In this document: positions 2,161-58,100 of the stretch, in pieces
Position numbering within the stretch: position 1 is the stretch's first letter
Layout: the number at the start of each line of letters is the position of its first letter
Sequence record: OV032902.1
Direction: 5' to 3' (one strand)
Length of the DNA: 64,000 bases
Translations under genes and position numbers: made by a program
Notes under the pieces: generated by a model
What the model was told of the DNA's origin: nothing
Database searches by the model: none
What the model saw: the letters and a program-made list of their open reading frames with translations, nothing else

Positions 2161-2484
2161 ATGCGTAAATTTGCAAACGGAGAAGAGGTACAAGTATTCT
2201 CTGAAACTACTGGTAAGTGGGAAGATACTTTTGTCATGGAATACATTGGCGATTGTGATGTAACCGTCATGCCTAACATGAAAAAGATTTTCTATACTAA
2301 CTGTTACAAGCTGGATTCCAGTTATCATCCGATAGCTAAGAAACACGGACAAGATTACGTTCTAGCTGAAGAGCAACATATCCGCCGTAAACCAAAGCAT
2401 CCTACGGTAGTCGACTTTGACGAAATGATGCACAAACTTAAAAACCCTGATCTAATCGAAAAGCCAGAAGGAGAAATGGCATGA
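2161..2484 (+). CDS. Hypothetical protein (107 aa), possibly small beta-barrel
   Basis: ATG at 2161 follows AAGGAAATAATC, preferred over the 2095 start. Stop overlaps the next start (ATGA). Confidence 0.8.
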   Translation: MRKFANGEEVQVFSETTGKWEDTFVMEYIGDCDVTVMPNMKKIFYTNCYKLDSSYHPIAKKHGQDYVLAEEQHIRRKPKHPTVVDFDEMMHKLKNPDLIEKPEGEMA

Positions 2485-3353
2485 GTAACAACAAAGGTAT
2501 TGGCGTACAATACAACAACATCAAAAAGACAGGCATTAGCCTAGAGACGCACATCAATCTAGTATATGCGGTACTGGCTTTATTCATCGGTCTTTTCATG
2601 TTCGTTGTTTACGAAAACGTAAAGCTTACTCGTGAGGTTGACGAGCTGACTCAAATGCTAGATAACGCAGAAGGTAATCTAGTTGACTCAGAAGACAATG
2701 CCTTGGCGCTGACTCGTGAATTAACGATGATGACCAAGCATGTTAAGGACTTAGAAGAGAAACTAAATCCTGAACCATTCAAGCCTGAGTTGGGTCTGAC
2801 TGATCTTCAGAATAAGTTGTGTCTTGCTATCACAGCTTTCACTGAAACAAACGGTGAACCTACCTTGGCACGGGAGACCATGTCTTGGGCCATCATAAAC
2901 AGAGCCATTGACCCTCGTGCGGCAGATGGCAAGAGTCGAGCTTACAAAAACAATACTTGTGCAGTAGGTGCGGCTAAGAACCAATACTCTGGTATGGGTC
3001 CATACATCGTAGATATTGAAGATGTAGTATGGGGTAACATTACATCCTTTACTCCTGCCCTGGCCAAAAAGAATGCAGAGGAAATGAAAGCATGGAAAGA
3101 CATCTTGCGCATCTCTTCTGAAATCATTGATGGTAAACTAACCCGAAAGACCACAGCCACTCATTTCATCTCCTTCCGAGGAATGAAAGGCGCCAAGCGT
3201 CCATCGTGGGTAGATTACTTCATGCCTGTAGGTACGACTACTGAATCTGGCTTGCATACTCTTTACCGTGATTATGGTTATGATCGCACAACAGGTGAGA
3301 TAGTTTACTTTACTAAGGCTACTCCATATAACCCTAACAAACATCGTTACTAG
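2481..3353 (+). CDS. Membrane-anchored cell-wall hydrolase, Hydrolase_2/SleB-like lytic transglycosylase
   Basis: N-terminal TM (INLVYAVLALFIGLFMFVVY) and a coiled coil, then CLAITAFTETNGE..AIINR..TCAV..NQYS, matching the SleB pattern CLAxxxYxEARGE..VIxNR..xCxV..QFS with the catalytic Glu. Confidence 0.78.
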   Translation: MSNNKGIGVQYNNIKKTGISLETHINLVYAVLALFIGLFMFVVYENVKLTREVDELTQMLDNAEGNLVDSEDNALALTRELTMMTKHVKDLEEKLNPEPFKPELGLTDLQNKLCLAITAFTETNGEPTLARETMSWAIINRAIDPRAADGKSRAYKNNTCAVGAAKNQYSGMGPYIVDIEDVVWGNITSFTPALAKKNAEEMKAWKDILRISSEIIDGKLTRKTTATHFISFRGMKGAKRPSWVDYFMPVGTTTESGLHTLYRDYGYDRTTGEIVYFTKATPYNPNKHRY

Positions 3354-3821: not shown

Positions 3822-3858
3822 GATGTGATACAATAAACATCTATACCACTGCTTTTAG

Positions 3859-3893
3859 CCTCCACAGCCTTCGGGTTGTGGAGGTATCTTTTT
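3859..3893 (+). terminator. UUCG-loop hairpin with U-rich tail
   Basis: CCTCCACAGCC-TTCG-GGTTGTGGAGG followed by TATCTTTTT. Confidence 0.7.
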
Positions 3894-3924: not shown

Positions 3925-4053
3925 ATGCGTCTTACTAACGGTCAAGTTCTTGTTATGGGTATTCTTTCTCTTGTTCTATTCTTTACAGTAGGTCAAGATA
4001 ACACTGAAGCTTACAACAATCACGTAATGGAAACAACAACTCATCAAGAGTAA
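3925..4053 (+). CDS. 42-aa single-TM peptide (absent from the ORF track)
   Basis: GGAG RBS; MRLTNGQVLVMGILSLVLFFTVGQDNTEAYNNHVMETTTHQE; host-like codons; followed by a hairpin. Confidence 0.7.
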   Translation: MRLTNGQVLVMGILSLVLFFTVGQDNTEAYNNHVMETTTHQE

Positions 4054-4061
4054 TATTATCA

Positions 4062-4083
4062 AAAGGCTTTTCGCAGAGCCTTT
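4062..4083 (+). terminator. Hairpin after the 42-aa ORF
   Basis: AAAGGCTTT-TCGC-AGAGCCTTT. Confidence 0.5.
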
Positions 4084-4120
4084 GAATAATCTTACTATCT
4101 AAAACAAAAGGAAACTTATT

Positions 4121-4384
4121 ATGTTCTATACTGCTAAACAATGGTGTGCTGCTAAACGTCTTGGTACTTTCATGGGCTTTGTTGGTTACACTGTACACAT
4201 GTTCCTAACTTGGTTAGAGAACCCTGTATCTTGGATCATCCTTGGTCTTAACGTAATCGCTGGTCCTGAAGCGGTTGTAGCTTGTATCGTAACTTGGGTT
4301 GTTATCGATGTAGTTATGTCTGCTATCGTAAACCTTGTAGCGTTTTTCTGTAACGACAACCGCATGATTGCGGATGCCGCTTAA
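4121..4384 (+). CDS. Small hydrophobic membrane protein (87 aa)
   Basis: AAGGAA RBS; mostly hydrophobic. Confidence 0.8.
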   Translation: MFYTAKQWCAAKRLGTFMGFVGYTVHMFLTWLENPVSWIILGLNVIAGPEAVVACIVTWVVIDVVMSAIVNLVAFFCNDNRMIADAA

Positions 4385-4425
4385 TCTTTACTATCTTAAT
4401 CTAAATCTAATTCGGAGTATTTCTC

Positions 4426-4764
4426 ATGTTTAAACTATTTACTGATATCAAACAAAAAGTAACTAACTTCTTCAACGGTGCTTACCTTGCACTTAAATCT
4501 GCATTCGCTTCAGAAAACAAAGCTGATGCTGCGATGTCTTATGCTGTTAACGCTAAAGACATGCCACTTGATGCAGCTACTCGTGCTGGTATCAAGTTCG
4601 GTGGTGTTCTTGGCTTCAACGTAACTCACCCACTACAACTATCTGTACTTGGTATTTACTTTGTAGCTGAAGCTTTCTTCGGTGCTGGCCTTGTTGCGGC
4701 ACTATGTGGCGTAGTAATTATTCCTGTAGTTACTGCTACTCTATGTGCAATCTTCCTTGACTAA
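4426..4764 (+). CDS. Membrane protein with MFKLF amphipathic N-terminus (112 aa)
   Basis: GGAG RBS; starts MFKLFTDIKQKVTNFF; hydrophobic C-terminal half. Confidence 0.82.
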   Translation: MFKLFTDIKQKVTNFFNGAYLALKSAFASENKADAAMSYAVNAKDMPLDAATRAGIKFGGVLGFNVTHPLQLSVLGIYFVAEAFFGAGLVAALCGVVIIPVVTATLCAIFLD

Positions 4765-4776
4765 TTCGGAGGTCAT

Positions 4777-5301
4777 ATGTTTAATTGGTTCAAAAATAAA
4801 ATCATGGCTGCCGCTAAGGCAGTCAAGGAGTTTTTCACTGAAGGTAAGTTTCTAGTGAAAGCGCCTAAGGTTATTCGCAATAACGTTTCGCCACTAGGTG
4901 GTTGGAAATGGTCACCTGAGTTAGATGAATATCTGACTCGTATCGAAGACACATACCTGGGCATGAACGAAGGTACTGTTGAGCTTCTAATTCAAGAGTT
5001 GCCTGGCGTGTTCGCAATGAAGTCAATCTCTAACCACCGTGGTATGCGCGTAGTTAAGCAATTCATCATTAATCAGCTAAAGCAGCTGGTAGCTGGTGAT
5101 AAAGAGAAAACGTCTTATCTTAACAAAATGGAACAGTTTATCCCTAACAAGGAAACTGGTCCTATGCCTGAATCACAAAAAGAAATCTCATACGGCATGG
5201 CTCGTGTGATCTGTCTATATTTCAACGAAGTACCTGCTCCTATGTTTTCTAACAATAAGGGGGCTAAGGTATTTAGTCTTCTTAAAGCAATGGAGCAATA
5301 A
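4777..5301 (+). CDS. Hypothetical protein with amphipathic N-terminus (174 aa)
   Basis: GGAGG RBS; starts MFNWFKNKIMAAAKAVKEFF. Confidence 0.82.
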   Translation: MFNWFKNKIMAAAKAVKEFFTEGKFLVKAPKVIRNNVSPLGGWKWSPELDEYLTRIEDTYLGMNEGTVELLIQELPGVFAMKSISNHRGMRVVKQFIINQLKQLVAGDKEKTSYLNKMEQFIPNKETGPMPESQKEISYGMARVICLYFNEVPAPMFSNNKGAKVFSLLKAMEQ

Positions 5302-5303
5302 TT

Positions 5304-5741
5304 ATGTTTAAACTGTTTAAGAAAATCATCAAGTCAGTTGTTGACTTTGTTAAATCTATCTTCTCTAAAGAAGAAAAGAAACAAGAAGTAATTAAAACCA
5401 AGGAAGAAAAACTTGGCGAACTATTTGACAAGAGCGTTCGCGGTAATGCTATTACTGAAAAAGATGTAGAACTAATCACTGCTGATACTCCAGCAGAAGC
5501 TATCTATATCGTAGATCATTTCACTGGTAGCCCAATGTTTCCGCAAGAAGGTCGCGTCATCTACTATTTCTTTGGTCAGTTTTGTGAAAACGAAACAGTT
5601 GACGAAAAACTTCAGCAGGCGATTCTTGATGTCGTTTTGAAGTTTGGTCCAAAGATCATAGAAACAAAAGGTATCTGTATTGGCGCGCGCGCTTCTTTTG
5701 CCGCGATAATTAAACGTTATGAAGAAAACAAGGACAAATAA
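5304..5741 (+). CDS. Hypothetical protein, paralog of 7952..8374
   Basis: Starts MFKLFKKIIKSVVDFVKSIF. SVRGNAITEKDVEL and FCENETVD match SVTGNPIKESDVAL and FAENKTVD. Confidence 0.85.
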   Translation: MFKLFKKIIKSVVDFVKSIFSKEEKKQEVIKTKEEKLGELFDKSVRGNAITEKDVELITADTPAEAIYIVDHFTGSPMFPQEGRVIYYFFGQFCENETVDEKLQQAILDVVLKFGPKIIETKGICIGARASFAAIIKRYEENKDK

Positions 5742-6607
5742 TGAATACTAACAAAATCACAAACGAAATTAACAACATCGTAATTTTTACGAGAAAGAAC
5801 GATGCTTTCATTTCACGCAATGCTATGGCCGATGCGACAGGCATTAATGGCACTATTGCTTCCATGGCCGTTGGTGCCGGTAGTGTACTTGGTGCACTTC
5901 TTCCGGTAGCTGTCGTTGACTTTTTCATCGACATGGCAAAGGAAACTGGCGTCGATGGCGCTGCTGTAGTGACAACTGCTTTATCTGAAATATGCGAATC
6001 AATCGGTCTCGAATATAAAGATAGCTTAGTTGCCTTGGTACTAGGCGGCGCTATTGCTGGCATCGCTGGTGCTGGCTTGGGTTGGTTAGTCAAACAACTT
6101 ATTGATTGGGGCGTTAAACGCATTCAATCAAAGAAGATAGAAGCCAAGTTCGAGATGTTTAAAAACGCAAATGCCGGTTTACAATCTACGGCCATTATGA
6201 TTGCAGAGCGCGAAGAGTTAACCGATTACGACGTATTTTGTCTACTGGAACAATTGGAAAACTTCATGTCTATTTTTGGTGTGAGCTTTGATGACTTAAA
6301 TAAACTAGTTAAGCGAGTTAACGAAATAAAGTTTGTTGAGTGTCAAGAGGAAATCATCGAAGAAAGCATTGATCTTCACGCTAACCTGCTCAACGAAGCA
6401 CTAGACGTAGAACTAAAGTCGATCCCAGACGAATACGTTTCTTCTGATCTAGATGAGACATATTTGCTGTTGTCTGAAATGGGCATCTCCTTGGATAACT
6501 GGCTTCATCTACTAGATGTAGAAAATCTATGTAAGAAACCACAAAATGAAATGAATAATTTCATGCTTAAATATAAACAGGAAATAAAGAAAAATGCAAT
6601 TGCGTAA
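5741..6607 (+). CDS. Glycine-zipper-like membrane protein, paralog of 8442..9299
   Basis: GSVLGALLP, GGAIAGIAGAGLG and TDY..F..FG..FDD..KFV are shared with the 8442 protein. Confidence 0.85.
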   Translation: MNTNKITNEINNIVIFTRKNDAFISRNAMADATGINGTIASMAVGAGSVLGALLPVAVVDFFIDMAKETGVDGAAVVTTALSEICESIGLEYKDSLVALVLGGAIAGIAGAGLGWLVKQLIDWGVKRIQSKKIEAKFEMFKNANAGLQSTAIMIAEREELTDYDVFCLLEQLENFMSIFGVSFDDLNKLVKRVNEIKFVECQEEIIEESIDLHANLLNEALDVELKSIPDEYVSSDLDETYLLLSEMGISLDNWLHLLDVENLCKKPQNEMNNFMLKYKQEIKKNAIA

Positions 6608-6878
6608 TCCGTTTCTAAATATCATTGCAGATCTATTGGTTGGCGATGAATTAGAAAAGCAACGACTCCATGCTAAAAGGTCGATTAAGGCCATTGTTTC
6701 TCTCTGTAAGTCAAATAGGTTCCGATTGACCGATGACCTACGAGAAGCCATCGAGGGAGTTTTTGATATAAATCCAACAGCGACACTGTCCTTTGAAGTC
6801 CACATGCGAAACCAAAATGGCGATGATATGAAAACAGCCATCGTTGACAGTATAGCTATTTTTGTTAAAGATGAGTAA
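6594..6878 (+). CDS. Hypothetical protein (94 aa), probable distant paralog of 9293..9631
   Basis: Overlaps the upstream stop; shares NP..EKQR..E.(V/L)F.(I/L).P with the 9293 protein. Confidence 0.7.
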   Translation: MQLRNPFLNIIADLLVGDELEKQRLHAKRSIKAIVSLCKSNRFRLTDDLREAIEGVFDINPTATLSFEVHMRNQNGDDMKTAIVDSIAIFVKDE

Positions 6879-6933
6879 ACCCCAATGGGTGTTTACTAAG
6901 CATCCATGAGAATTTATTTAAAGAGAGTAACTT

Positions 6934-7503
6934 ATGTTTAAACTATTCAAACGCATCAAAGATGCAATCGTAAACTTCGTATCTTCTATCTTCGGTAAGA
7001 AAGAAGAAGCTAAACAAGAAACTGTTCAAGAAGAAACTGTATCTCCTGAAGTACAGCAGTCTATTGAAGAGTTCGAGTCTAAAGTAGATCTTCCTGAGAA
7101 AAGCAACAACGGTCTTGATTACGTAGCTAAAGAGTTCCGTCATTACCTAGGTCGTCATGCTACTCATGATATCCGTAACATCGAAGACATCCAACGTGTA
7201 TGGTTTGCACGTGGTGTTAAGATCGAACAGGTTAAGAAGCGCATGCTTGGTCTACGTAACGTGTTCAATATGAAAGTAATCGAGTCATTGACTACAGGTG
7301 CTGAAGAGTGTCTAGGTCGTGACGGTATCGATACTATCGAGAAGCACGCAATGTCTATCGAGACTGGTTACCGCAAAGCTCTTAAGAACCTACTTAAGAA
7401 CTCTGTGAAACACATGCCATCTTACTTTGCTAAGAAGCATAAGAACCAGATCGCTAAGATCATCAACGACATCACGGCTACTAGCTATGTTCCGGCTAAT
7501 TAA
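6934..7503 (+). CDS. Hypothetical protein with MFKLFK N-terminus (189 aa)
   Basis: Starts MFKLFKRIKDAIVNFVSSIFGKKEE; strongly host-like codons. Confidence 0.85.
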   Translation: MFKLFKRIKDAIVNFVSSIFGKKEEAKQETVQEETVSPEVQQSIEEFESKVDLPEKSNNGLDYVAKEFRHYLGRHATHDIRNIEDIQRVWFARGVKIEQVKKRMLGLRNVFNMKVIESLTTGAEECLGRDGIDTIEKHAMSIETGYRKALKNLLKNSVKHMPSYFAKKHKNQIAKIINDITATSYVPAN

Positions 7504-7942
7504 GAAATGGGTGCGTAAATTCAAGTTATGGCTGTGCGGTCCATCTGTGCCAGACAAACTTGATGCACCTCAGGTGAAACATCCTGACCCAGTCGAAACA
7601 GATGTTCTCGTTGTAGACAATCAATGTGCTCTTGATATCATAATGGTCATCAAGGCAGCTGGTGCGTTTATTACTGAAGTTAAGCATGTTGGCTTTTCTA
7701 AAGTATCACGCGGCTTGCGACTAAAGCTCATAGCGCTGCATAAAATGCTACTGCAAATAGACAGTGTAGATAGCGTAACGCGTCGATCGTCGACACGTCT
7801 GCATGAACTAATCGATGAGGTCATCGCATATGCGAAAGAGGAAACTACTCCGATTAAACGCGAAGAGTTCTTCCGCTTTGCAGAGATGATGAAACTCAAT
7901 ATCCAAACTATCTTACGTAATCGCAACATCCCAATGGGATAA
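7487..7942 (+). CDS. Hypothetical protein with MFRLIKK N-terminus (151 aa)
   Basis: The in-frame ATG at 7487 gives MFRLIKKWVRKFKLW, matching the neighbouring leaders; preferred over 7427. Confidence 0.72.
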   Translation: MFRLIKKWVRKFKLWLCGPSVPDKLDAPQVKHPDPVETDVLVVDNQCALDIIMVIKAAGAFITEVKHVGFSKVSRGLRLKLIALHKMLLQIDSVDSVTRRSSTRLHELIDEVIAYAKEETTPIKREEFFRFAEMMKLNIQTILRNRNIPMG

Positions 7943-7951
7943 GGAAACATA

Positions 7952-8374
7952 ATGTTTAAACTATTTGGTAAAATTAAAGACGCTGTTGTTGGCTTCTTTA
8001 AATCTGTTGTTGAATTTGTCTTTGGTAAGAAAGAAGATAAATCTGAAAAAGCTGAGCGTACTCTAGAGGACGTCTTCAAAGAAAGTGTAACTGGTAATCC
8101 AATTAAAGAGTCAGACGTGGCTCTTTTCCAAGTGGATACACTAGAAACAGCCAAGAAAATCGTTTCGATGTTCGTTTCTATTACTGCACCTAAAGACGGA
8201 GAAGGTTGTGTTTGTTTGACCGAGCCTCTATTTGCAGAAAACAAAACAGTAGACGGCTGTCTACGTATCATCTTCCTTGCAGTAATTCTTAAGTACCACG
8301 ATGAATTGATTAAGGATGAGAAAACCAAACTTATCACTACTTATGTGATGCGTCGCTATAAAGGTGAAGAGTAA
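7952..8374 (+). CDS. Hypothetical protein, paralog of 5304..5741
   Basis: AAGGAA RBS; starts MFKLFGKIKDAVVGFFKSVV. Confidence 0.85.
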   Translation: MFKLFGKIKDAVVGFFKSVVEFVFGKKEDKSEKAERTLEDVFKESVTGNPIKESDVALFQVDTLETAKKIVSMFVSITAPKDGEGCVCLTEPLFAENKTVDGCLRIIFLAVILKYHDELIKDEKTKLITTYVMRRYKGEE

Positions 8375-8441
8375 CGCACAAAGGACATCTTATGGTGTCC
8401 TTGATGAGTTATTCATCACGTAAACAAAAAAGGAAAAAATC

Positions 8442-9299
8442 ATGAACACTGAAATCAACAAAGTTTCTCTTGCTATTCAAGAAATTGTAAAGTACACAAA
8501 CGTTAACCAATCCATCGTTGACCTTGGTATGAAGGAAGACGCTAAAGGACTAGGTGAATTTGGCGACGCAGCAGCCATGGGCATCGGTGGTCTTTTGGGT
8601 GCTCTGCTGCCTAGTTTCGTTTATGACTACTTTATGGAAATGGGTCAACAGATAGGCGCAGCAGCAATCACGGAAGCTATCTCTAACTTTTGTGAGGAAT
8701 TAGGTATCGATTATCTAGATGGCCTTTTTACAATTGTTATTGGCAGTGCATTGTCAGGCGTACTTGGCATGGTCGCGGGCTTTCTAATCAAACGAGGTAT
8801 TGAGTGGTTAGTTAAGCGCCGTCAGAAAAAGCGCAACGAGAAACTATGGGCCCATTATGCGGACTCGATTGACTCCCTGCATAAACAAGCTACTAGTATC
8901 TTACTGGCTGAAGAGATTACCGATTACTCTAGTTTTAAACTTATGACTGATCTAGAGTTCTTCTTGGAATTATTCGGAGCCAAGTTTGACGATATGCATC
9001 GCTTTGCTAAGAAAGTACACGCGGCCAAATTTGTTAAAGGTCAGGATGAGTTATTAGAAAGCGGTCTTGAAAAACATGCCGGTCTTCGTGAAGCGTTAGT
9101 TACTACGGAACTCAAACTAGTTCCTGATCATCTCGCACCAGAGGACTTAGAGGACGCATATAGCCTGATGGCGGATATGGGTTTTGGCACACCATTAGAT
9201 TATTTAAAATATGGCGACGTTGATCGTCTGGCAGAAGAGCCAGTAGAAGAATTAACTCGCATCATGAAGAGATTAAAAGAGGAAGATTTAACATGGTAG
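8442..9299 (+). CDS. Glycine-zipper-like membrane protein, paralog of 5741..6607
   Basis: GIGGLLGALLP and GSALSGVLGMVAG; collinear similarity over ~285 aa. Confidence 0.85.
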   Translation: MNTEINKVSLAIQEIVKYTNVNQSIVDLGMKEDAKGLGEFGDAAAMGIGGLLGALLPSFVYDYFMEMGQQIGAAAITEAISNFCEELGIDYLDGLFTIVIGSALSGVLGMVAGFLIKRGIEWLVKRRQKKRNEKLWAHYADSIDSLHKQATSILLAEEITDYSSFKLMTDLEFFLELFGAKFDDMHRFAKKVHAAKFVKGQDELLESGLEKHAGLREALVTTELKLVPDHLAPEDLEDAYSLMADMGFGTPLDYLKYGDVDRLAEEPVEELTRIMKRLKEEDLTW

Positions 9300-9631
9300 C
9301 ATTATTAGCACTTGGCAGTAACCCAGTTGGATGGGGTCTACTTGGAGCCCTAGCAGTGGTAGAAGGAGTTCGCCAGGGTAAGAATATCTATGATGACCAC
9401 AAGGAAAAGCAACGTCAAGAAAAATTCAATTCTTGGCTTTCTTTCCTTGAAGAAAAACAAAAAGTCGGTGAAATGGTACTGAAATGGCCAGACCGCAAAA
9501 ACCTGGAACTATTGTTTGGATTAGAACCTGATCTAAATTTCGAGTATGAACTAAAGCTTGGTCACGAGCATACTGGAAACTGGAGCAAGGCTCTAAAGTG
9601 GGTATTTAAGAAGTACCTGAAGGACGACTAA
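9293..9631 (+). CDS. Small protein with N-terminal hydrophobic segment (NPVGW)
   Basis: GAGGAAG RBS; MVALLALGSNPVGWGLLGALAVV. Confidence 0.8.
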   Translation: MVALLALGSNPVGWGLLGALAVVEGVRQGKNIYDDHKEKQRQEKFNSWLSFLEEKQKVGEMVLKWPDRKNLELLFGLEPDLNFEYELKLGHEHTGNWSKALKWVFKKYLKDD

Positions 9632-9637
9632 ATCCTT

Positions 9638-9662
9638 AAAGCTCATTCTCCGAGTGGGCTTT
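9638..9662 (+). terminator. Hairpin after the paralog cluster
   Basis: AAAGCTCATTC-TCC-GAGTGGGCTTT. Confidence 0.55.
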
Positions 9663-9713
9663 GTGGACTATGTCCATAACCTAACTTTAATCTATATACA
9701 AGGAATATTTCAA

Positions 9714-9815
9714 ATGGAAAATTTTGACCTAGTTGACTTCTGTGAAAACAATGCGCCACAATTAGATGTGGACCTACCTAGCGTTGAAGAGCTAATCGCT
9801 GAATTTGACAGTTAA
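9714..9815 (+). CDS. 33-aa acidic peptide (absent from the ORF track)
   Basis: AAGGAA RBS; MENFDLVDFCENNAPQLDVDLPSVEELIAEFDS. Confidence 0.62.
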   Translation: MENFDLVDFCENNAPQLDVDLPSVEELIAEFDS

Positions 9816-9817
9816 AT

Positions 9818-9856
9818 TGAATTTGAAAAGATTTACACTTCTATATAACTGATATG
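9818..9856 (+). promoter_or_regulatory. Early-type phage promoter, copy 3
   Basis: TGAATTTGAAAAGATTTACACTTCTATATAACTGATATG. Confidence 0.7.
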
Positions 9857-9931
9857 CATAGGATGAATTAATCATCCATTTAAACCAAACCCCTGGCAAT
9901 AATGCCCCAATCCTAAATAAGGAATACTATT

Positions 9932-10696
9932 ATGAAAACTCGTCTAACTTTCGCTATCGCTGCTGTTCTTGCTTCTACTTCTGCTTTCGCTGTAGACTTC
10001 TCAACTACTCACACTACTGGTACTACAACTACTTCGGTTGACATCAACCAACAAGTAACTGGTAAAGTGAATGGTCTAGAATTCAACTACTCGCAAAACC
10101 GTGGTGCAGCAGCAGGTGGCGTGAACGGCAATAACTGTGTTGGCGCTGTTTGTGATGGCACTGGTAATGATACTCTATCTGTAGGTATCTCTATCGACGC
10201 TACTCAAACAATCACTAAGCTAGACCAACTAACTACCGGCCTGTCAGTAACTACTGCTGAAAACTGTGACGTAACTGTTGCTATCGGCGGTATCTCTAAC
10301 AGCCAAGGTGTTCGTACTTCACACACTATCGGTGAAACTGAAACAGTTAACAACAACAAAACTTGGATCACTTCTGGTTCAATCGAAGTTGTTACTCAAA
10401 CTGACGCAGGTTACACTGGTGGTCACTGGAGCCCATCTAAGCTAGGTAACGACTTCACTGTATCTATCGGTGGTCAAACTGTAAGCTCTGAAGGTGACGC
10501 AGTAAACGTTATGGCACTATCAACTGCACTACTTGGTGATCTAACTCAAGTAACAGTTGGCGGTCAAGATCTTGCACATGCAGACACTAACGCAATGTCT
10601 GTTAAGATCGAGTCTAGCAAAATCAAAGTTATCGATACTTCTGTATCTACAACTGAAACAGAATCTTCTTCTACTACTTGGTACGAAAACAACTAA
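9932..10696 (+). CDS. Secreted Thr/Ser/Gly-rich beta protein with Sec signal peptide
   Basis: MKTRLTFAIAAVLASTSAFA (A-x-A cleavage site); alternating polar/hydrophobic strands; three Cys. Confidence 0.85.
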   Translation: MKTRLTFAIAAVLASTSAFAVDFSTTHTTGTTTTSVDINQQVTGKVNGLEFNYSQNRGAAAGGVNGNNCVGAVCDGTGNDTLSVGISIDATQTITKLDQLTTGLSVTTAENCDVTVAIGGISNSQGVRTSHTIGETETVNNNKTWITSGSIEVVTQTDAGYTGGHWSPSKLGNDFTVSIGGQTVSSEGDAVNVMALSTALLGDLTQVTVGGQDLAHADTNAMSVKIESSKIKVIDTSVSTTETESSSTTWYENN

Positions 10697-10799
10697 GTAT
10701 TAGATTAAGATAAGTAAATACGTGTAAGCTGACGGAGGTACCTTAGGGTGCCTCCTGAAGTTGCACTTAATCCAATTTTTATTTTTAAGGAATTTTGTC

Positions 10800-11471
10800 A
10801 TGAAGGAAAAGATTGTCGCAGGTCTTTTGATTGCATTGGGTTCATTCTCGTTTAACACTGAAGCTTCTACTTGTGAGACAGGCGGATGTGGCGATAGTAA
10901 CTCTAACCTAAGCGGTTCACAAAACCAATCACAATACAACACGCTACAGCAATCGCCGACAATGGCGCTCAACTCAAGTCAGTCGAATACTGTTCTAAAT
11001 GCCAGTCATGCTACTTCGGGTTCTATCTCGCATTCAGCAGATGGCGGTATTAGCTTCAGTGGTTCGTGTCCTACAAACACCCTAGTCGTCAATGGCGGCT
11101 ACGGAGAGAACGATTCAGAATCTTTCCCGACTAACTATCGCTCTGAGTCTAACAATGCTTACGTTAACGTAGGTGTCGTTATTCCATGGGGTCAGGCAGT
11201 CGATGATTGTAATGAAGGCGAGGCTCTCAAAATCCGTACAGCTAAGTTCGCTTACACTAAGCTACAGATTTCAACTTGTTTGGTATTCATGCAGCAAGGT
11301 ATCTCATTAGATGCTGTTGCTAAGATGAGTCCTGAGTTTGCAATCTGTCCTAAGGTAGCAATGCAAGCTGAGCAAAACATGCATGGACGTATTGGTCGTC
11401 AAGCTGTAGAGCAATACAAAAAGAACATGCAGGCACAAGGAATCAATCCTTACAAAACGTTTGCTAAGTAA
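10800..11471 (+). CDS. Secreted or outer-membrane protein with signal peptide, Q/N/S-rich N-region, beta-hairpin and Cys-containing helical tail
   Basis: ATG at 10800 after AAGGAA; MKEKIVAGLLIALGSFSFNTEA; strands NTLVVNGGY and NAYVNVGVVIPWG. Confidence 0.8.
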   Translation: MKEKIVAGLLIALGSFSFNTEASTCETGGCGDSNSNLSGSQNQSQYNTLQQSPTMALNSSQSNTVLNASHATSGSISHSADGGISFSGSCPTNTLVVNGGYGENDSESFPTNYRSESNNAYVNVGVVIPWGQAVDDCNEGEALKIRTAKFAYTKLQISTCLVFMQQGISLDAVAKMSPEFAICPKVAMQAEQNMHGRIGRQAVEQYKKNMQAQGINPYKTFAK

Positions 11472-11478
11472 TAAACTC

Positions 11479-11500
11479 GCAGTCTCTTACGAGAGGCTGC
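11479..11500 (+). terminator. UNCG-loop hairpin
   Basis: GCAGTCTCT-TACG-AGAGGCTGC. Confidence 0.6.
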
Positions 11501-49191: not shown

Positions 49192-52100
49192 ATGAGTCTT
49201 TTACCGACTATCATTCGCTTGTACCATCACCAGGGAACACAGGATATTACAAAGTGGGTACTATGGGCTGACCGAAATGCGGCAGACGTACCAAGTAAGA
49301 TTCCAACGTTCCTTGAAACATACTACTACCGTAAAGGTACATATGTAGTTCATAACGATCGCATCTTCCGTGCAAACAAGATCATTATGAAAGGTACATT
49401 CGATGCCGACGAGTGGACCGAAATCGATCAGATGACTGGTTTCGTTGCCCGCTACCGTAGCGACATTGATTACGAACAAGACTACTACATTCTTGATTCT
49501 GACAGTAAGCTACTCCGTAACCGTTATGCTTTCTCTGCGAAAGTATACGATGAAAATGATTGGGAAGCTGTAGTAACAGGCTCGGAAGCTGAGACTGCTA
49601 CTGTTTACCTGGATCAACTAGATAGTATCGAAGAGTTCGAAGTAGAAGATGGTATCTTCATTGAACTTGGCGGTATTCCAGATGCGTACGACCCGTTCGC
49701 TGATTTGGAGCCTATCGAAAAATACTTCACAGAAGAACGTGAAGGTAACTACTACTCTTTCTCTAAAGAGCTAAAGGTCTTTACTGACTTAGTCGCAGGT
49801 AACCCTGCAAGCCATGGTGATAAAGTAGCCCGTGTTAACCCTGTGTTTGGTAACATGGTACTTTTCCAAGAAGACGAAGATAATCGTCCGACTTACTACG
49901 AAACAGAAGACGGAATCGGTTACCTTGTCTTTACTGGCAACGAACATCTACTAGGTGACTTAGGTACGACTACAATCGATAACCTAAACATTACTCTAGG
50001 TGTTCCTGGTACTGGTCATTTGAATCTGGTTGAGCATGAAGTGACAGACGGCATTGTTCGTTTCGGTCCTACGTTCCCGGATTCAACTAAGACTTGGTAT
50101 CTGAGTGAAGGTTTCTTACCTGAAGAAGAACTATCTACGTCTGAGCGTATTGCTGTAGATGAAGAAGTACTTCAACGTTCTATTGCGTCTTACCCTAGTG
50201 CGACAGTTCAATCTATGTCGAACTGGTTCCTGAATGATGTTAACTTCAATGAAGACATCTCAGGTTGGGACATGTCAGGTAAGTTCTTTACAGACGGCAT
50301 GTTTAAGAACGCTACTCAGTTCAACCAGCACATCGGTGCATGGGACATGGAAAACGTAGAGAATACGGCTTCTATGTTTGAGGGTGCGAGCAGCTTTAAC
50401 TTCCCTCTACATGAGTGGGACTTTGCTCAGCTGAAAGTTACCCGTGCAATGTTTAAAGATGCAATTGCTTTCAACCAAGATCTTTCTCTATGGGAAATGT
50501 TCAACGTTGTTGATGCATCTGCTATGTTCCAAGGTGCCGTAGCCTTTAATGGCTTCCTAGGTCTATGGAACATGCCTAACTTGCTTGACGCGTCTTACAT
50601 GCTTGACGGCGCAATTGCATTCGACCAAGACGTAAGTCAGTTCCGTTTATCGGAAGTAACTAACCTAGTCGGTATGTTCCGTAATGCGACGGTATTCAAT
50701 CGTCCTATTACTCAGTGGAGCACAACTAAGGTTACTGACATCTCGTTCATGTTCGAAGGTGCAGAAGCATTCAATCAAGACCTGGATACTTTTGTTACGT
50801 CTCAAGTAACTGGCATGATTGGCGTATTCGACGGAGCGACTGCGTTTAATGGTGACATCACTGGATGGGACACTATTAACGTAAACAGCATGATGCGTAT
50901 GTTCCGCAATGCAGTTGCGTTTAACCAAGACATCAATCCATGGTTGACAGACAATGTTAACAACATGGAAGAAATGTTTAGTGGTGCTGCGGCATTTACT
51001 TACGACATTTCTGATTGGTGTGTGCGTAACATTCTAGCAGAGCCGATTGGCTTTGATGCGGATACAAATGCTGCATGGGAAAACCAAACAGCATTGCAAC
51101 CAAAGTGGGGCACACCGTGTCTTCGTTACCTAGCTCGTTCTTACTATGACGCAAGTCGTATCGATACTCTATTCCAAGATGCTGCGGGTACAATCCCTGT
51201 ACAGAATCCTGGTGATAAAGTATTGCGCTGGAATGACCTTTCGGTTAACAACAATGCAGCTATCGGTGTTTTAGCTACAGCACCTACGTATCGTGAAGAT
51301 GCTAACGGTCGCGGCTATGTTGAATTCAACACTGATGAGTTTCTGTCATTTACTGATGCTGGTATTTCTTACGATACATGGCAAACAGTACCTGGCGTTG
51401 GTTTCTTCCAACTAAGTAACACTAATACTGTTATTGGTCCGAATGACACCACAGGCTCTCAGAAGCGCTACATCGGTCAGTTTGTCGCACTTGAGTCAAA
51501 CTACTCAGCTATTGATGAAACAGTCGTAGTAGAGTTTGTGCGCGAAGAACAGGGACTATACGACCCTAACACTGTGACTAACCTTTCTTACTACTTCCAA
51601 AACATGTTGGACTTTAACTCTGACATCGCTGAGTGGGAAATGGGCGGAATCACAAACGTTGAAGGTATGTTCCAGAATGCGTCTATCTTTGATGCCGGCA
51701 TCGGTGTTTGGGATATGGGCAATGTTGAGAACTTCTCGTATATGTTTGACGGTGCAGTTGCCTTCAATCAAGACATTGGTGCGTGGAATACTGCTAATGC
51801 TACTAACATGTCATACATGTTTGATGGCGCGTCTACGTTTAACCAAACTCTTGCATGGGATACATCTGGTGTTACTGACTTTGATGGTATGTTCCGTGGT
51901 GCAGTTAACTATCGTTCAGTTACTAACTTCGACTTAACTTCTGCTCTAAGCATTAACGGTATGTTCGAAGGTGCTATTAACTTTAACCAACCTTTCACGG
52001 GTCCAGCTCCAGTTCTTATGGAAGCAAGCTCTGTGTTCCAAGGTGCGACTAAGTTCAATAGTTCAGTAGATAGTCTTATTGCTGAAAACGTTTGGGATAT

Positions 52101-55100
52101 CTCGAATATCTTTAAAGACGCAGCAGCGTTTAACCAAGACCTAAGTTCTTGGGTTACGTCTGACGTAACAACAATGGAAGGTTCGTTTGATGGGGCGACA
52201 GTATTCGATCAAGACTTAGTCTGGGATACAAGCTCTGTAGAAACACTACAAAACACTTTCCGTAATGCACGTAACTTTAATAGTGACATCTCTGGATGGG
52301 TAACTACTAATGTTACAAACATGAGTCAAACCTTTGCCGGTGCATCTGCATTCAACACAGACATTCAGTCGTGGGATGTACGCAACGTAACAACATTCGA
52401 ATACACATTCGTTAACGCAGGTTCATTCAACCAGCCTCTTAACTTATGGCGCACAGAGAATGCTGTAACATTCAAAGGTATGTTCCAAGGTGCACAAACG
52501 TTCAACCAAGTTCTAAGTAACTGGGATACGGACACGGTACTTGACTTTGACTTCATGTTCTTCAATGCCTCTGCCTTCAATAACGATATCTCTACATGGT
52601 GTGTTAAGCAGATTCCTGTAGCTGGCCCAGAAGACTTCTCTTTTGGTTCTCCGCTTATTGCTGACAATACTCCTATCTGGGGTGCACGCTGTTTGAGTGA
52701 TCTAGCAGACCTATGGTACGACTCGTCAGACATCACGAAAGTGTTTACTGACTTGGCTAAGACCACACAGCCATCTCCTGGCGACAAGGTTGCTGTATTA
52801 GAAGACAAAGGTAAGTTGGGCCTAGATGCTATCCAGTCGGATGTAACTAAGCAGCCTATCTATCGTGAAGATGCTAATGGTCTAGGTTACCTAGAATTCC
52901 CTGTTGGTTCTTCATTGACGGCTACTGGTGTTATCGGTACTGGTGTTTGGGTTAACAACATTCCATCGGTAGGTGGTTACGGTGATTACATCGTCGTTCC
53001 TGCATCTACATTTACACTGGACTTTGATTCAGTAAATGTTCCAGCAGCTTCTCGTAAACTAGGTCAAGCTATCGTATACTACGCAGCTCCTAACGAAAGT
53101 GATTTGCTGGTACTGAACAAAGCTGTACGTCGTTGGTCTGACTTATATGCACCTGGTGCTGTAACAGATATTTCGGCGGCTATTGAAGGTCGTGCTGATT
53201 TCGACTGGGATATTTCTACTTGGACTATGGGTCTTGTTGAAAAGGCTAATTACCTATTGGCAGGCTGTGAACAGTTTGATGTGGATATTTCAGATTGGGA
53301 TACTTCTTCTTTACAAGAAGCAGAGGGTATGTTCCTAGACTGTAAGATCTTTAACCAAGACCTTACTTGGGATGTACAGAACCTAGCAAACGCTAAAGCA
53401 ATGTTCCGTGGCTGTACGGAGTTTAATGGTGCTATTGGTGGTTGGGTTACTACAGCTCTTGCTGACTTGACGCAGACTTTCTACGCAGCTCGTGCATTCG
53501 ACCAAGACATTTCTGGTTGGGATACACAAAACGTTTTATCTTTCCAAGAGACGTTCTCTACGACTCGTGACTTTAACCAAGACCTAAGTGCTTGGAATAC
53601 AAGTGCGGCTACCACAATGAGTGGTATGTTCTTGGGTGCAGAATCGTTTAACTCTCCTGTGGCGACATGGGACACGTCAAGCGTTACAGACTTCTCTGGT
53701 ATGTTCCAGGCTGCTGCTGCATTCGACCAAGTTGTAGACCACTTCGATACATCCAGTGCAACAACTCTGGCTCGTATGTTCCGTGATGCAGTTACGTTTA
53801 ACCGTAGCATGATGTCTTGGGATGTTCGTCAAGTAGTTGACTTCTCTGAGATGTTCTATGGTGCGGATGAATTCCAAGGTCAAATCTCTTCTTGGGTATT
53901 TGACGCTAGCGATATTCTGATGGACCGTATGTTCCGCGATGCATACAAGTTTAATGATGACATCGGTGTTTGGGAAACAAACAACGTAACGTCTATGCTT
54001 GAGATGTTCCGCGATGCATTCGTGTTTGGTCGTAACCTTATCACGTGGTGTGTTAAAGACGTTCTTCCTTCTGAAGCTACAAACTTCGGAACTAACAGCC
54101 AACTTCAAGCTGCACAGATTCCTCTATTTGGTGAGCCATGTATTGGTGAGCTATTGGATGGTTACTACGATGCGGCTATCAAACGTACAGTTGCTACAAA
54201 CATTGACGGTACAGGTGAACCACTTGACGGCGATAAAGTAGCGTATCTAGGTGACTTGTCTCCTAATGACAATCACGCTGTACAGGCAGACCCTGCCCTA
54301 CGTCCAACTTATCGTGAAGACGTTAATGGTCGTGGTTACCTTGTATTCGAAGATGATCAACATCTTTTAGTTCCTGCTATTACTGGTGCCTCTCGCAACT
54401 GGGTAGCTGTTTGTGGTCGTGGTACTCCAGAGTGGACTGGCCAAACAAACAACCCTGCGAAAATTGGTATTAAGTATGCCGGTGGTGCAAACAAGGTATG
54501 GTACTTTGGCGCAGAAGCAATTACTGCAACGGCACGTACTGCTGCTGAAGAACTATTGATTCGCAATGCAATGCAAATCCGTGCACTGAACTATCCTTCT
54601 GACTTACAGTCTGAAATGGATTGGTTCTTCCATAACGAACAATACCTAAGTGGCGGCCTAGCTGACCTTAATACGGTTGGTCTATCTACACTGGAAGGTA
54701 CGTTCAAAGGATGTCAACGCTACAATGAAGATATCACTGGTTGGGATACATCGGCTATCGCGTCGTTTGCTCAAACCTTTGAAGGCTGTGCTACTCTTAA
54801 CCAAGACTTCTCTACTTGGACCGTAGCTCAAGGCTTAAGCTTCTCTGGTATGTTTAACGGTTGTACTTCTTTATCGTTCGATGCTTCTGGCTGGGACGTA
54901 AGTCGTGCTTCTAACTTCAGTAACATGTTCCGCAGCTGTGTGGCTTTCAATGCCGATATCTCAGGCTGGACAATTCGTACTGATGTTGACATTAACTTCT
55001 TTGGTATGTTTGCTGGTGCAACTATCTTTAACCAAGATATCACTGGCTGGAATATGGACCGTGTTGTAAACACAGGTGAAATGTTCTACGGTGCTCAAGC

Positions 55101-58100
55101 CTTCAACCAAGACCTAAGTCAATGGGATGTTGAAAGTATCACAAATATGGAATCTATGTTCCGTGGTGCAATTGCATTCAATCAAGACATTGGTGATTGG
55201 CGTGTTGGTAACGTATTGAACATGGACCAAATGTTCAACGGTGCAACGGTATTTGATCAAGACATCTCTCGTTGGTGTGTAAGCCAAATTCCAACAACTC
55301 CAACTAACTTCGATACTGCTTCGGGTTTCTTGGGTGATCTGGCTAAGCAACCTATCTGGGGTGGCTACTGTCTTATTGAGCGTTCGGAGTTCTTCCACTC
55401 TGCACGTGATAAAGATTACATGTTCCAAGACTCAGCAGGTACTGTGCCTGTTACAGCTCCTGGACAACCTGTAGGTTACGTTACCGACTTGACTGGTAAC
55501 TTCCGTCCATTGCTACAGACAAATAATGCTAAGCGTCCAGTATATCGTGAAGACGATAATGGAAACGGATACATTGAGTTTGGTCCAAACCAAACGTTAG
55601 TCCTAGACTACAATGGCCGTGCTGACCATATTCTATCTGTTGCTGACCGTGGTAAGATTCTATTTGCTGACGAAGACTTCTTCGGTGGTAATGACATTAA
55701 GTCTTACTTGTCTGCTGAAACGAAAGGTGTTCAGCGTATGGGCGACATGGTAGGTATTCGTACCGACCTTGCTACAGCAGATAAAACATCAGCAAACGCT
55801 ACTATGCAACAACGTGGTTTAGTTTACCATGAATCTGCACAGCCTAGTATGCGTCAGTTCTTTGCTGATAACTTGAACGTCAATAGTGCCGATATCGGTG
55901 CATGGGATATGAGCAACGTAGTTGACGTATCTGAGATGTTCTTGAACTGTGCTTCATTCAATCAAGACCTAACAGGTTGGAATGTTTCACAGGTAACAAA
56001 CTTTAGCGCACTATTCTCTGGTGCGGGTACATTTAACCAAGCGATTAATGGTTGGAACACAGCTAACGCAACTAACATGTCATTGATGTTTAAAGGTGCT
56101 TCATCTTACAATCAATCACTTGTAGGTCTTGACACTTCTTCTGTAACTACAGTAGCAAGCATGTTCCAAGACGCAGTAGCTTACAACCAAACAATCAATG
56201 GACTAGATTTAAGTAACTGTACGGACTTCTCTCGTATGTTCCAAAACGCAGTTATCTTTAACGCGTCCGTTACTAACATTGATACTTCATCTGCAACAAC
56301 TGTGGAATCTATGTTCCAAGATGCTAACCTGTTTAACAACGGTGGCTCTGCGATGAATGCAATGGACTTTGGTAACTGTACAAACTTTAGCGGCATGTTC
56401 ATGAACGCTGTGAACTTCAATCAACAAGTTTCGACTTGGGTATTGTACACAGGTGGTTCTGCTATTAACATGACTGCAATGTTTAAAGCGGCACGTAAGT
56501 TTAACCGTGACATCACTAGCTGGGACACAACGCGTGTTACTAACTACACAGAGATGTTTATGAATGCTAACGTATTCAACAACGGTGGCGTTGCTATGAC
56601 AGAAGCGGCAGGTAACTTCAATGTTGCAAATGCTGTTACTCTGGAAGGTATGTTCGAAAACGCACGTCTATTCAATGTAGATATCAGCGACTGGACTACT
56701 GGCAATGTAACAAACATGTCTCGCTTGTTCCGTAGTGATACGGGCGTATCTGTATTTAACCAACCTATTGGCGGTTGGAATGCGTCATCTGTGACGACTA
56801 TGTCTGAGATGTTCCGTGCGGCTACAGCGTTTAACCAAAACGTTGGTACGTGGAATGTTAATAACGTAACAGACATGTCGGAAATGTTTATGTCGGCAAC
56901 GGCGTACAATAACGCAGGTGTACAAAACCTTGAGAGTTGGAATGTTAATAATGTTACTACTATGGAAGGCATGTTTGAGTTCGCTTCAAGCTTTAACTCA
57001 TTCCTATGTCGCTGGAACGTAGAAAACGTTGTTAATATGGAACGCATGTTCAATGATGCTGACGCAATGACTGCTTACATCGCAGGTTGGGACGTTGCAC
57101 ATATTGCTACCGAGCCTACTGACTTCGGTGGTGACAACATTGAAAACCCTCCAGTTTGGGGTGGTGTTGCAGAACCATGTCGTTCAGACTGTACTCGTGG
57201 TCTTGTTGATGAAGGTGCAGAAAACGTTTACTTGGCGTTTGAAGCTCAATGGCTATTCCAAGATGCAGGTGGTACTATCCCTGTAACTGCCGATGGTCAG
57301 AAAATCCTTCTTATTGAAGATAGCTCTGGTAATGGTCGCCACATTACGTTTGATGCGGCTGAAGCTCCTACGTACCGTTTAGATGGTGCTGATGGTTACT
57401 TCGAATTCCCTGCTGGTACTCATGTTGAGTTTACTGGCCTGCCAGGCAACTCTAAAGTTATCTTTGATTTAATTGGTATCGGTGCTACTTACGTTCGTCG
57501 TAGTAACAACGGTAACTTATTCGACAATGCTCGTACAGGTACATACCTAGTGTCTTCTATTGTTGTTGCTCCAGTGACTGCCGATGAGGTAGCTGTAATT
57601 GGCGCATTGAATAGTTGTACTCCTGGTTACTCTGTAGCTACAACAACTCTTGAATATCTATTCGCAACAGAACCTGTTATCGGTGACGTGACTGGCTGGA
57701 ATACTTTGTCAGTTACAAACATGCATAACACGTTTGCGTTCTGTCCGACGTTCAACCAAGACATTTCATCATGGGCTACCTCTAACGTTACTACGATGCA
57801 AGGTATGTTCAGCATGGCCGTTAGCTTCAACCAAGACATTTCTGGTTGGGCAGTAAACAATGTGGAAAACTTCCGCTATATGTTTAACGGTGCTGCTGCA
57901 TTTAACTGTGGTGAACCAGCGGGTCAAAGTACGACTCCGATGTCATGGACAACGAACTCTGTTACAAACATGTCTGGCATGTTTGAGAACGCAACTTCGT
58001 TTAACCAACCGATTGGTACATGGTTAGTAACATCGAACACTGACTACTCTTACATGTTTAAGGGTGCCTCGGCATTCAATCAAAACATCAATACATGGAT

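Follow-up and report, generated by a model that had tools for sequence, protein, structure and literature searches.

Why do six neighboring genes of a jumbo phage, most of them encoding unrelated proteins, begin with closely related N-terminal sequences? The genes lie in a 64,000-nt stretch (the window) that constitutes the final 64 kb of OV032902.1, the genome of Vibrio phage vB_VpaM_sm033 (320,253 bp; record position minus 256,253 gives window position), and window 4000-9700 is 100% identical to this phage. Sm033 encodes a nuclear-shell protein, several split RNA-polymerase beta subunits, a prohead protease, and phiKZ-type structural genes, which together identify it as a phiKZ-like, nucleus-forming jumbo phage. 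The six genes are the annotated coding sequences SM033_00269, 270, 271, 274, 275, and 276 (here g269 to g276). An earlier note on this DNA had described them as six open reading frames (ORFs) with a common N-terminal leader, read as a reusable membrane-targeting tag for early proteins, and the ORFs and N-termini are exactly as it stated. We propose, with a probability of roughly one half, that the leader is a modular in-plane membrane anchor, followed by a charged linker and variable domains that would work with co-encoded membrane partners.

The start motif is confined to these genes. In a scan that covered the 320-kb genome except 2,252 nt (record 246001-248252), MF[KRNQ][LWIVMF][FILVM] occurs at the start of these six genes only, and the other four matches fall inside ORFs or in a short unannotated antisense ORF. 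With the amino-acid frequencies of this phage, 0.023 starts of this kind would be expected in 309 genes; the corresponding Poisson probability of six or more, 2e-13, ignores the clustering of all six within 3.9 kb on one strand. The narrower pattern given in the earlier note, MF(K/R/N)(L/W)(F/I)K, describes the six starts except at position 6, which is lysine in only four of them. The leader is located at the extreme N-terminus, as the starts are set by ribosome-binding sites and match the annotation; a GGAG-/AGGA-type site lies 6-10 nt upstream of five starts, g275 (7487) being the one without. A Met-Phe start is expected to retain its initiator methionine.

The helical analysis that the earlier note suggested bears out its description of a cationic amphipathic helix. 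The helical hydrophobic moment of the first 18 residues is 0.59-0.74 in five leaders, which rank 1 to 5 when the 428 ORFs of 80 aa or more are compared (genome mean 0.22, standard deviation 0.115), and 0.44 in g270 (rank 18). The leaders carry a net charge of +2 to +6 and three to five aromatic residues, and their HeliQuest-style discrimination factors are 1.2-2.6. No leader passes a 19-residue hydrophobicity threshold, and charges recur every 3-4 residues. A Sec/Tat signal or a transmembrane (TM) helix was ruled out for the leader, as there is no uninterrupted hydrophobic core and Lys or Asp breaks every stretch; genuine signal-like N-termini are found, by contrast, in g280 and g281.

The leader precedes a variety of bodies, all encoded on the plus strand. 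In g269 (112 aa; 4426..4764) it comprises aa 1-30 (window 4426-4515; moment 0.59) and is followed by a hydrophobic C-terminal half with a TM segment at aa 93-111, while in g270 (174 aa; 4777..5301) a weaker version (aa 1-22) precedes an orphan soluble body. The leader of g271 (145 aa; 5304..5741), at aa 1-20, has the highest moment in the genome (0.74) and is joined by a K/E-rich linker to a body that we term A. A second A body is found in g276 (140 aa; 7952..8374), behind a leader of aa 1-25 and an FGKKED junction. Between them, g274 (189 aa; 6934..7503) has a leader at aa 1-20, a K/E linker, and a unique body, and g275 (151 aa; 7487..7942), which overlaps g274 by 17 nt, is very cationic (charge +6, moment 0.60), W-rich, and the weakest member of the set. 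In all-versus-all BLASTP, g271 and g276 are alike throughout (40% identity over 120 aa), and g274 matches both over its first 32-46 residues only, so the earlier statement that only g271 and g276 are similar past the leader is upheld.

Each A gene heads a small cassette, which is likewise encoded entirely on the plus strand. The start of g272 (288 aa; 5741..6607) overlaps the stop of g271, and the first cassette ends with the small orphan gene g273 (94 aa; 6594..6878); g276 is likewise followed by g277 (285 aa; 8442..9299) and g278 (112 aa; 9293..9631). As g272 and g277, here called the B proteins, are also paralogs (36% identity over 281 aa), g271-g272-g273 and g276-g277-g278 constitute a duplicated cassette. 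Both B proteins contain two glycine-rich hydrophobic segments, a lysine/arginine-rich stretch, and a helical acidic C-terminal domain; by the positive-inside rule, they would form a hairpin with both ends cytoplasmic. The g278 protein has a Gly-rich hydrophobic N-terminus that falls under the TM threshold used.

Related leaders are found in other phages at the same position. The gene ending at window 2069 encodes a homolog of the phiKZ portal protein gp129, and the leader-gene island lies directly downstream of it. By portal identity, the closest phages are C-ZP2022 and pir03 (61%), followed by BONAISHI (37%) and the Yong phages (30%). In other phages, four or five small genes occupy the slot that follows the portal gene and begin with related N-termini, of the form MKTKL(I/V)..K(D/N)(A/S)(I/V)VNFV in pir03 and C-ZP2022 and MF(A/K/L)F(I/L/K).. 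in BONAISHI; no such cluster was found in Yong MS32 or phiKZ. A cross-phage profile built from the first 18 leader columns without any sm033 sequence was applied to 3,701 ATG starts of sm033, and it ranked g274 first (E 1.4e-5), g276 second, and g271 third (to E 2.5e-4), with g269 sixth, g270 eighth, and g275 18th. Accordingly, the leader ascribed to all six genes is clear in g274, g276, and g271 and probable in g269, whereas the assignment of g270 and g275 to the family is weak. In the reciprocal test, with a profile lacking BONAISHI sequences, ORF128, ORF127, and ORF130 came out on top of 3,292 starts in the whole BONAISHI genome. A possible further leader-like start outside the BONAISHI island (ORF266; E 0.27; no Pfam family) was not counted.

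The flanks of the island are conserved, with g265, g267, g280, and g281 having pir03 orthologs at 54-73% identity, while neither the leader-protein bodies nor g272, g273, g277, or g278 have a counterpart in pir03 or BONAISHI. The leader genes that pir03, C-ZP2022, and BONAISHI have in this slot encode other bodies; the leader genes thus fill a hypervariable island between conserved flanks. One trend does recur: the first leader genes of the island also bear TM segments in three of three phages (g269; pir03 18522, with three TM segments; BONAISHI ORF127 and ORF128). In addition, the body of g268 (87 aa, two TM segments; 4121..4384, plus strand) is homologous to the leader-bearing BONAISHI ORF127 (E 5e-5), and its own N-terminus is not leader-like.

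Metagenomic relatives extend this picture. An exhaustive HMMER search of 1.84 billion representatives with a g272/g277 profile yielded eight proteins, four of them full length. The short contigs that encode these proteins have one gene arrangement in common: a first gene that, as far as it is covered, opens with the end of a leader (..VVEFFFGKEEEKE, ..FFFGKEEEKEF, or ..FISAIRWVKSFFVSEEKE), then a small TM-anchored gene, and then the B-type gene. In a variant, contig L129, the small gene instead follows the B gene, as in sm033; L129 also keeps the order B gene, small gene, g280-like gene, g281-like gene. On two contigs, the B-type gene is followed by a new gene beginning MFKYIQTA..VV(E/N)FFFGKEE. 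Cassettes combining leader proteins with two-TM B proteins and small TM proteins occur twice in sm033 and in at least four metagenomic relatives; in position and layout, g278 is analogous to the small TM-anchored genes of these cassettes, with no sequence similarity detected. Two full-length leader proteins, P0010 and P0011, begin MFKFIQTAYNWVV.. and MFTFIRNAIAYCV.., respectively. In the NCBI metagenome assembly GCA_020047355.1 (L135:288-2273), P0011 follows a glutathionylspermidine-synthase-like gene (PF03738), a context unlike the portal-linked island.

Two of these contigs are informative about how the leader moves. Over residues 1-38, the leader protein of contig L137 and P0010 are 84% identical, and past this point they are unrelated, a sharp mosaic boundary at the leader-linker junction that shows the module to be transferable. 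Contig L133 starts and finishes with an identical 30 nt inside this junction; in that genome, the junction DNA is therefore exactly repeated, which breaks the assembly and offers a recombination site. The earlier note had proposed searching relatives for the leader on other bodies, and it is present on such bodies in pir03, C-ZP2022, BONAISHI, and the metagenomic contigs (L137 versus P0010). Taken at the level of sequence, these comparisons favor a reusable module over a leftover from the duplication of whole genes.

The same data bear on the proposal that the leader has no targeting role, being either a remnant of tandem duplication kept by translation-initiation selection (an A/T-rich ATGTTTAAA start) or a membrane-damaging peptide like cationic lysis peptides. 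Four genes do begin ATGTTTAAACT although the preferred Phe codon is TTC, the g271-g273/g276-g278 cassette is duplicated, and lysis-type genes are adjacent. However, conservation spans 18-35 residues and extends to phages with portals only 37-61% identical, in which the bodies are replaced; the pir03 leaders begin MKTKL, with different DNA; and the step from 84% to undetectable identity between L137 and P0010 indicates a transferable module. Moreover, where residues of the sm033 leaders are identical, the codon is shared in 37 of 58 cases; chance would give roughly 20-50%, depending on the residue. As this is only moderately above chance, most of the conservation resides at the protein level and does not reflect recent gene conversion. 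We consider an absence of targeting function very unlikely. The DNA-level alternative raised in the earlier note, in which the common start reflects translation-initiation selection or shuffling of 5' ends, thus fails to account for the bulk of the similarity in sm033, but 5'-end shuffling does occur in an uncultivated relative, as seen from the 30-nt junction repeat and the unrelated bodies.

The bodies themselves are orphans. No leader protein of sm033, pir03, BONAISHI, or the metagenomes has a match above threshold in Pfam or PHROGs. A tblastn search of 50,697 phage records with g271, g274, and g272 returned only sm033 itself, as did a search of phage records with the bare leaders, and a word-indexed search of 5.8 billion proteins with g271 returned only its own copy. 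Foldseek matched no PDB or BFVD entry to the g271 model at E <= 0.001, neither g274 nor g272 yielded anything informative in the ESM Atlas, and the AlphaFold2 (AF2) model of g272 was unusable (predicted local distance difference test, pLDDT, 37). In IMG/VR, a degenerate DNA pattern for MFKLFxxIK had at least 114 single matches, nearly all in short or internal ORFs, and revealed no chimallivirus cluster; a related-locus search there with the portal protein or the B-family alignment found nothing.

Genomic context provides the next indication of function. Strong terminator-like hairpins are found at 2079-2108, 3858-3885, and 11479-11500. The second of these (plus strand; 12-bp stem plus T run) lies upstream of the leader-gene unit and the third (plus strand) closes it after g281; no hairpin of similar strength occurs between 3885 and 11479. 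The leader genes therefore appear to be co-transcribed, in one unit (3925-11471), with g267 (one TM segment), g268, and g280/g281. A weaker terminator-like match at 4805-4825 (plus strand), an 8-bp GC-rich hairpin followed by T residues, lies within the leader-coding part of g270 (the MAAAKAVKEFF region) and is probably merely coding sequence. Sigma-70-like promoter matches are fewer than the shuffled expectation. The DNA upstream of g268 (4091-4100) and g269 (4388-4396) has AATCTT(T)ACTATCT(A/T)AA in common; this element, 'CTTACTATCT', was rejected as a promoter motif, as it is not found genome-wide, and is a trace of local duplication.

Close upstream of the unit are g265 (2481..3353, plus strand) and g266, which has two TM segments. 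The conserved g265 encodes an N-terminal TM segment (aa 25-43) and a coiled coil, and its C-terminal part looks like a cell-wall hydrolase of the SleB type (PF07486-like). This assignment derives from ESM Atlas comparison with PF07486 clusters (feature score 0.93 with 190 shared features; structural TM-scores 0.61 and 0.75); in Pfam hmmscan, g265 is below the threshold of Pfam's own model. It is conserved in pir03, C-ZP2022, BONAISHI, the Yong phages, and GR7B/GR11A. Together, g265 and g266 may be part of a lysis apparatus, distinct from the gp144-like 'endolysin' near window 15350. On the downstream side, g280 and g281 (9932..11471, plus strand), with signal-peptide-like N-termini, are 59% and 67% identical to their pir03 orthologs. 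Both are Thr/Ser/Asn-rich and belong to no Pfam family.

This setting divides the earlier interpretation. Neither early expression nor the role at the early phage-infection vesicle that the note had raised finds support; the genes belong to a unit delimited by terminators, which follows the portal gene and a hydrolase of the lysis type. What stands of the proposed tag is a reusable module with a helix of the membrane-binding type, among neighbors that mostly encode membrane or exported proteins.

In the membrane-anchor model, about 18-22 residues, more in some members, would form a cationic, phenylalanine-rich amphipathic helix resting on the anionic inner membrane, or on a membrane derived from it, on the side that faces the cytoplasm. 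The lysine/glutamate-rich linker would keep a variable, fast-evolving domain beside the membrane, where it could act with integral membrane partners, namely the two-segment B proteins and the small TM-anchored proteins. The genes constitute a hypervariable accessory island within an envelope/lysis gene neighborhood. Their most likely role is conflict or control at the cell envelope, for instance superinfection exclusion, opposition to host defenses that act at membranes, or the timing of lysis, as judged from the rapid turnover, the tandem cassettes, and the proximity to lysis-type genes. Lipid binding, topology, partner interaction, and biological role are what we infer here from the observed properties of the leader and its surroundings.

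Several observations support this model. The extreme amphipathicity and positive charge of the leader are as expected of a membrane anchor, and the cassettes recur with two-TM B proteins and small TM proteins. The unit is rich in membrane and exported proteins and has a SleB-like hydrolase and a two-TM protein upstream, and cross-phage profiles put island genes on top in both the sm033 and the BONAISHI genomes. Where leader proteins carry TM segments of their own, the leader necessarily adjoins the membrane. Bodies and partners diverge or are exchanged but the leader remains similar, which argues for an invariant target, for example a lipid surface, and not for the variable partner. Finally, AF2 models the g271 leader and linker as a helix (pLDDT about 60) that precedes a confident, compact domain.

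The model also has a known precedent. In bactofilins, the membrane-targeting peptide (consensus MFSKKKK) has been dissected experimentally: its N-terminal hydrophobic residues enter the lipid bilayer, and its lysines bind to the head groups of phosphatidylglycerol (PMC12448750). Like this peptide and the helices of Noc, MreB, MinE, and SepF (PMC12448750, PMC4331003, PMC3124506, PMC13507996), the phage leader is found at the extreme N-terminus, combines hydrophobic or aromatic residues with lysines, and is followed by a candidate linker and functional domain. The Met-Phe start with lysines nearby, shared with bactofilin in particular, further supports an anchor. However, the phage leader is longer (18-35 aa, compared to eight residues in bactofilin), one leader is common to many unrelated, fast-evolving phage proteins of a single island, some members also bear TM segments, and membrane binding is putative here.

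Other observations weigh against a membrane anchor. Residues 2-45 of g271 are predicted as one continuous helix rather than as a helix plus a disordered linker, despite the K/E-rich, low-complexity stretch that follows the leader. Amphipathicity is weaker not only in g270 but also in the pir03 leaders and some of those in BONAISHI (moments 0.28-0.47). About half of the members have [G/S]-x-E at the leader-linker junction, which fits a phiKZ-like prohead-protease site. Amphipathic helices also serve protein-protein contacts and coiled coils, and, as all bodies are orphans, no function corroborates a membrane role.

The predicted helix of g271 raises the alternative that the leader is a docking or oligomerization helix, which would bind one conserved protein (a host factor, g265-g267, the nuclear shell, or tubulin) or self-assemble as a coiled coil. 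The AF2 model (overall pLDDT 72) gives a single long helix before a compact helical domain at pLDDT 81-89, and the hydrophobic positions of the leader have a heptad-like 1-4/5-8-12-15-19 spacing. Two conserved membrane proteins of the flanks, g265 and g267, accompany the island in sm033, pir03, and C-ZP2022, and g265 does so in BONAISHI as well. Yong-type phages, however, have a g265 ortholog and no leader island, and no candidate receptor could be identified; the strong positive charge, the aromatic residues, and the Met-Phe start are more typical of lipid-surface binding. Docking to a protein is, on balance, doubtful.

The junction motif and the location next to the portal gene suggest a different alternative, a capsid-targeting propeptide. 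Here, the leader would dock the proteins on the prohead core and be removed by the prohead protease, and the bodies would be packaged and injected with the DNA, as with the internal proteins of T4. The T4 internal proteins have a common 10-20-residue capsid-targeting sequence that is cut off by the prohead protease, and a common short leader on unrelated bodies in a hyperplastic locus is the T4 pattern (PMC5694885). Internal head proteins of phiKZ-like phages likewise have conserved short N-termini, which are cut at S/A/G-x-E (phiKZ) or A-x-E (SPN3US); SPN3US gp53 and gp54 have an identical 15-residue N-terminus, phiKZ gp93 is cut at SLE-13, and SPN3US gp47, a packaged ejection protein, can have a TM helix (PMC5694885). 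In the island, the junction F-[G/S]-K-(K)-E-[E/D] gives [S/A/G]-x-E in about seven of 14 leaders (g269, g271, pir03 18954 and 20406, P0010/L133, P0011, and L129), and sm033 encodes the prohead protease that would cut there. Thus, the leader resembles the T4 IPI-III/Alt capsid-targeting sequences and the phiKZ/SPN3US propeptides (PMC5694885, PMC3012670) in being a short N-terminal segment on small proteins that are otherwise unrelated or have diverged, encoded at a variable locus close to head genes, with a glutamate-containing junction as a candidate protease site.

The physical properties of the leader, however, weigh against such a propeptide. It is cationic and strongly amphipathic, while the N-termini of the sm033 PF12699 paralogs and of phiKZ gp93-97, internal head proteins of the same lineage, are anionic (charge -1 to -5), have moments of 0.05-0.39, and show no profile match. 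The cleavage motif is inconsistent, being absent or out of register in g270, g274, g275, g276, and several pir03 and BONAISHI members, and such tripeptides arise easily within a K/E-rich linker. Multi-TM members and partners that are integral membrane proteins would also be hard to fit into a prohead. A capsid-targeting propeptide is an unlikely explanation, though the strongest of the alternatives to a membrane anchor.

The PF12699 paralogs lie outside the window, where five tandem genes encode proteins of 366-446 aa (L006:34034-40025; record 230034-236025). One matches PF12699 (phiKZ internal head protein) at E 2.7e-10 and another narrowly misses the threshold; the acidic N-termini of these paralogs are similar to those that are cleaved in phiKZ gp93-97. 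A further observation concerns the opposite end of the window, where one open frame of more than 4,900 codons (49192-64000, plus strand) runs past the record end and consists of DUF285/PF03382 repeats (unit MFxxAxxFNQDIxxW; E 4.9e-145 for the first 1,000 aa). When the record ends are joined, this frame stops at record nt 44, just 5' of SM033_00001 (2,508 aa); the GenBank record has no coding sequence annotated over record 305434-319195.

In polymorphic effector and toxin loci, a conserved N-terminal trafficking module is combined with swappable C-terminal domains. The leader island is similar to these loci in its sharp boundary between N-terminal module and body, its tandem cassettes with small partner genes, and an exact junction DNA repeat that could guide recombination. 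It differs in that no trafficking or toxin domain is detectable, the genes belong to a lytic phage, and there is no secretion apparatus. A bolder proposal, which we put forward tentatively and hold to be improbable, is that the leader represents a new class of phage address tag. Such a tag would send interchangeable effector domains to a single compartment of the infection cycle of nucleus-forming phages, which could be the early-vesicle membrane or the capsid interior for injection, and recombination at the conserved leader-linker junction would allow effectors to be swapped quickly.

N-terminal amphipathic anchors and capsid-targeting leaders are each already known separately. In the literature, we found no description of one transferable leader on fast-turnover orphan proteins in nucleus-forming jumbo phages, and the preprint on the phiKZ early phage infection vesicle neither contains the word 'amphipathic' nor describes a shared N-terminal leader. 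What appears to be new is thus not the targeting helix as such but its use, as a leader that recombines and is common to a hypervariable group of jumbo-phage proteins. If the leader is a membrane tag, it singles out a group of phage proteins working at the envelope of the host or at membranes derived from the phage, in a family whose membrane biology has only begun to emerge, and it would provide a short portable tag for experiments. If it is instead a packaging tag, it would tell which accessory proteins this clade injects. Either way, roughly twenty 'hypothetical proteins' in four phages, together with several metagenomes, are joined into one testable system.

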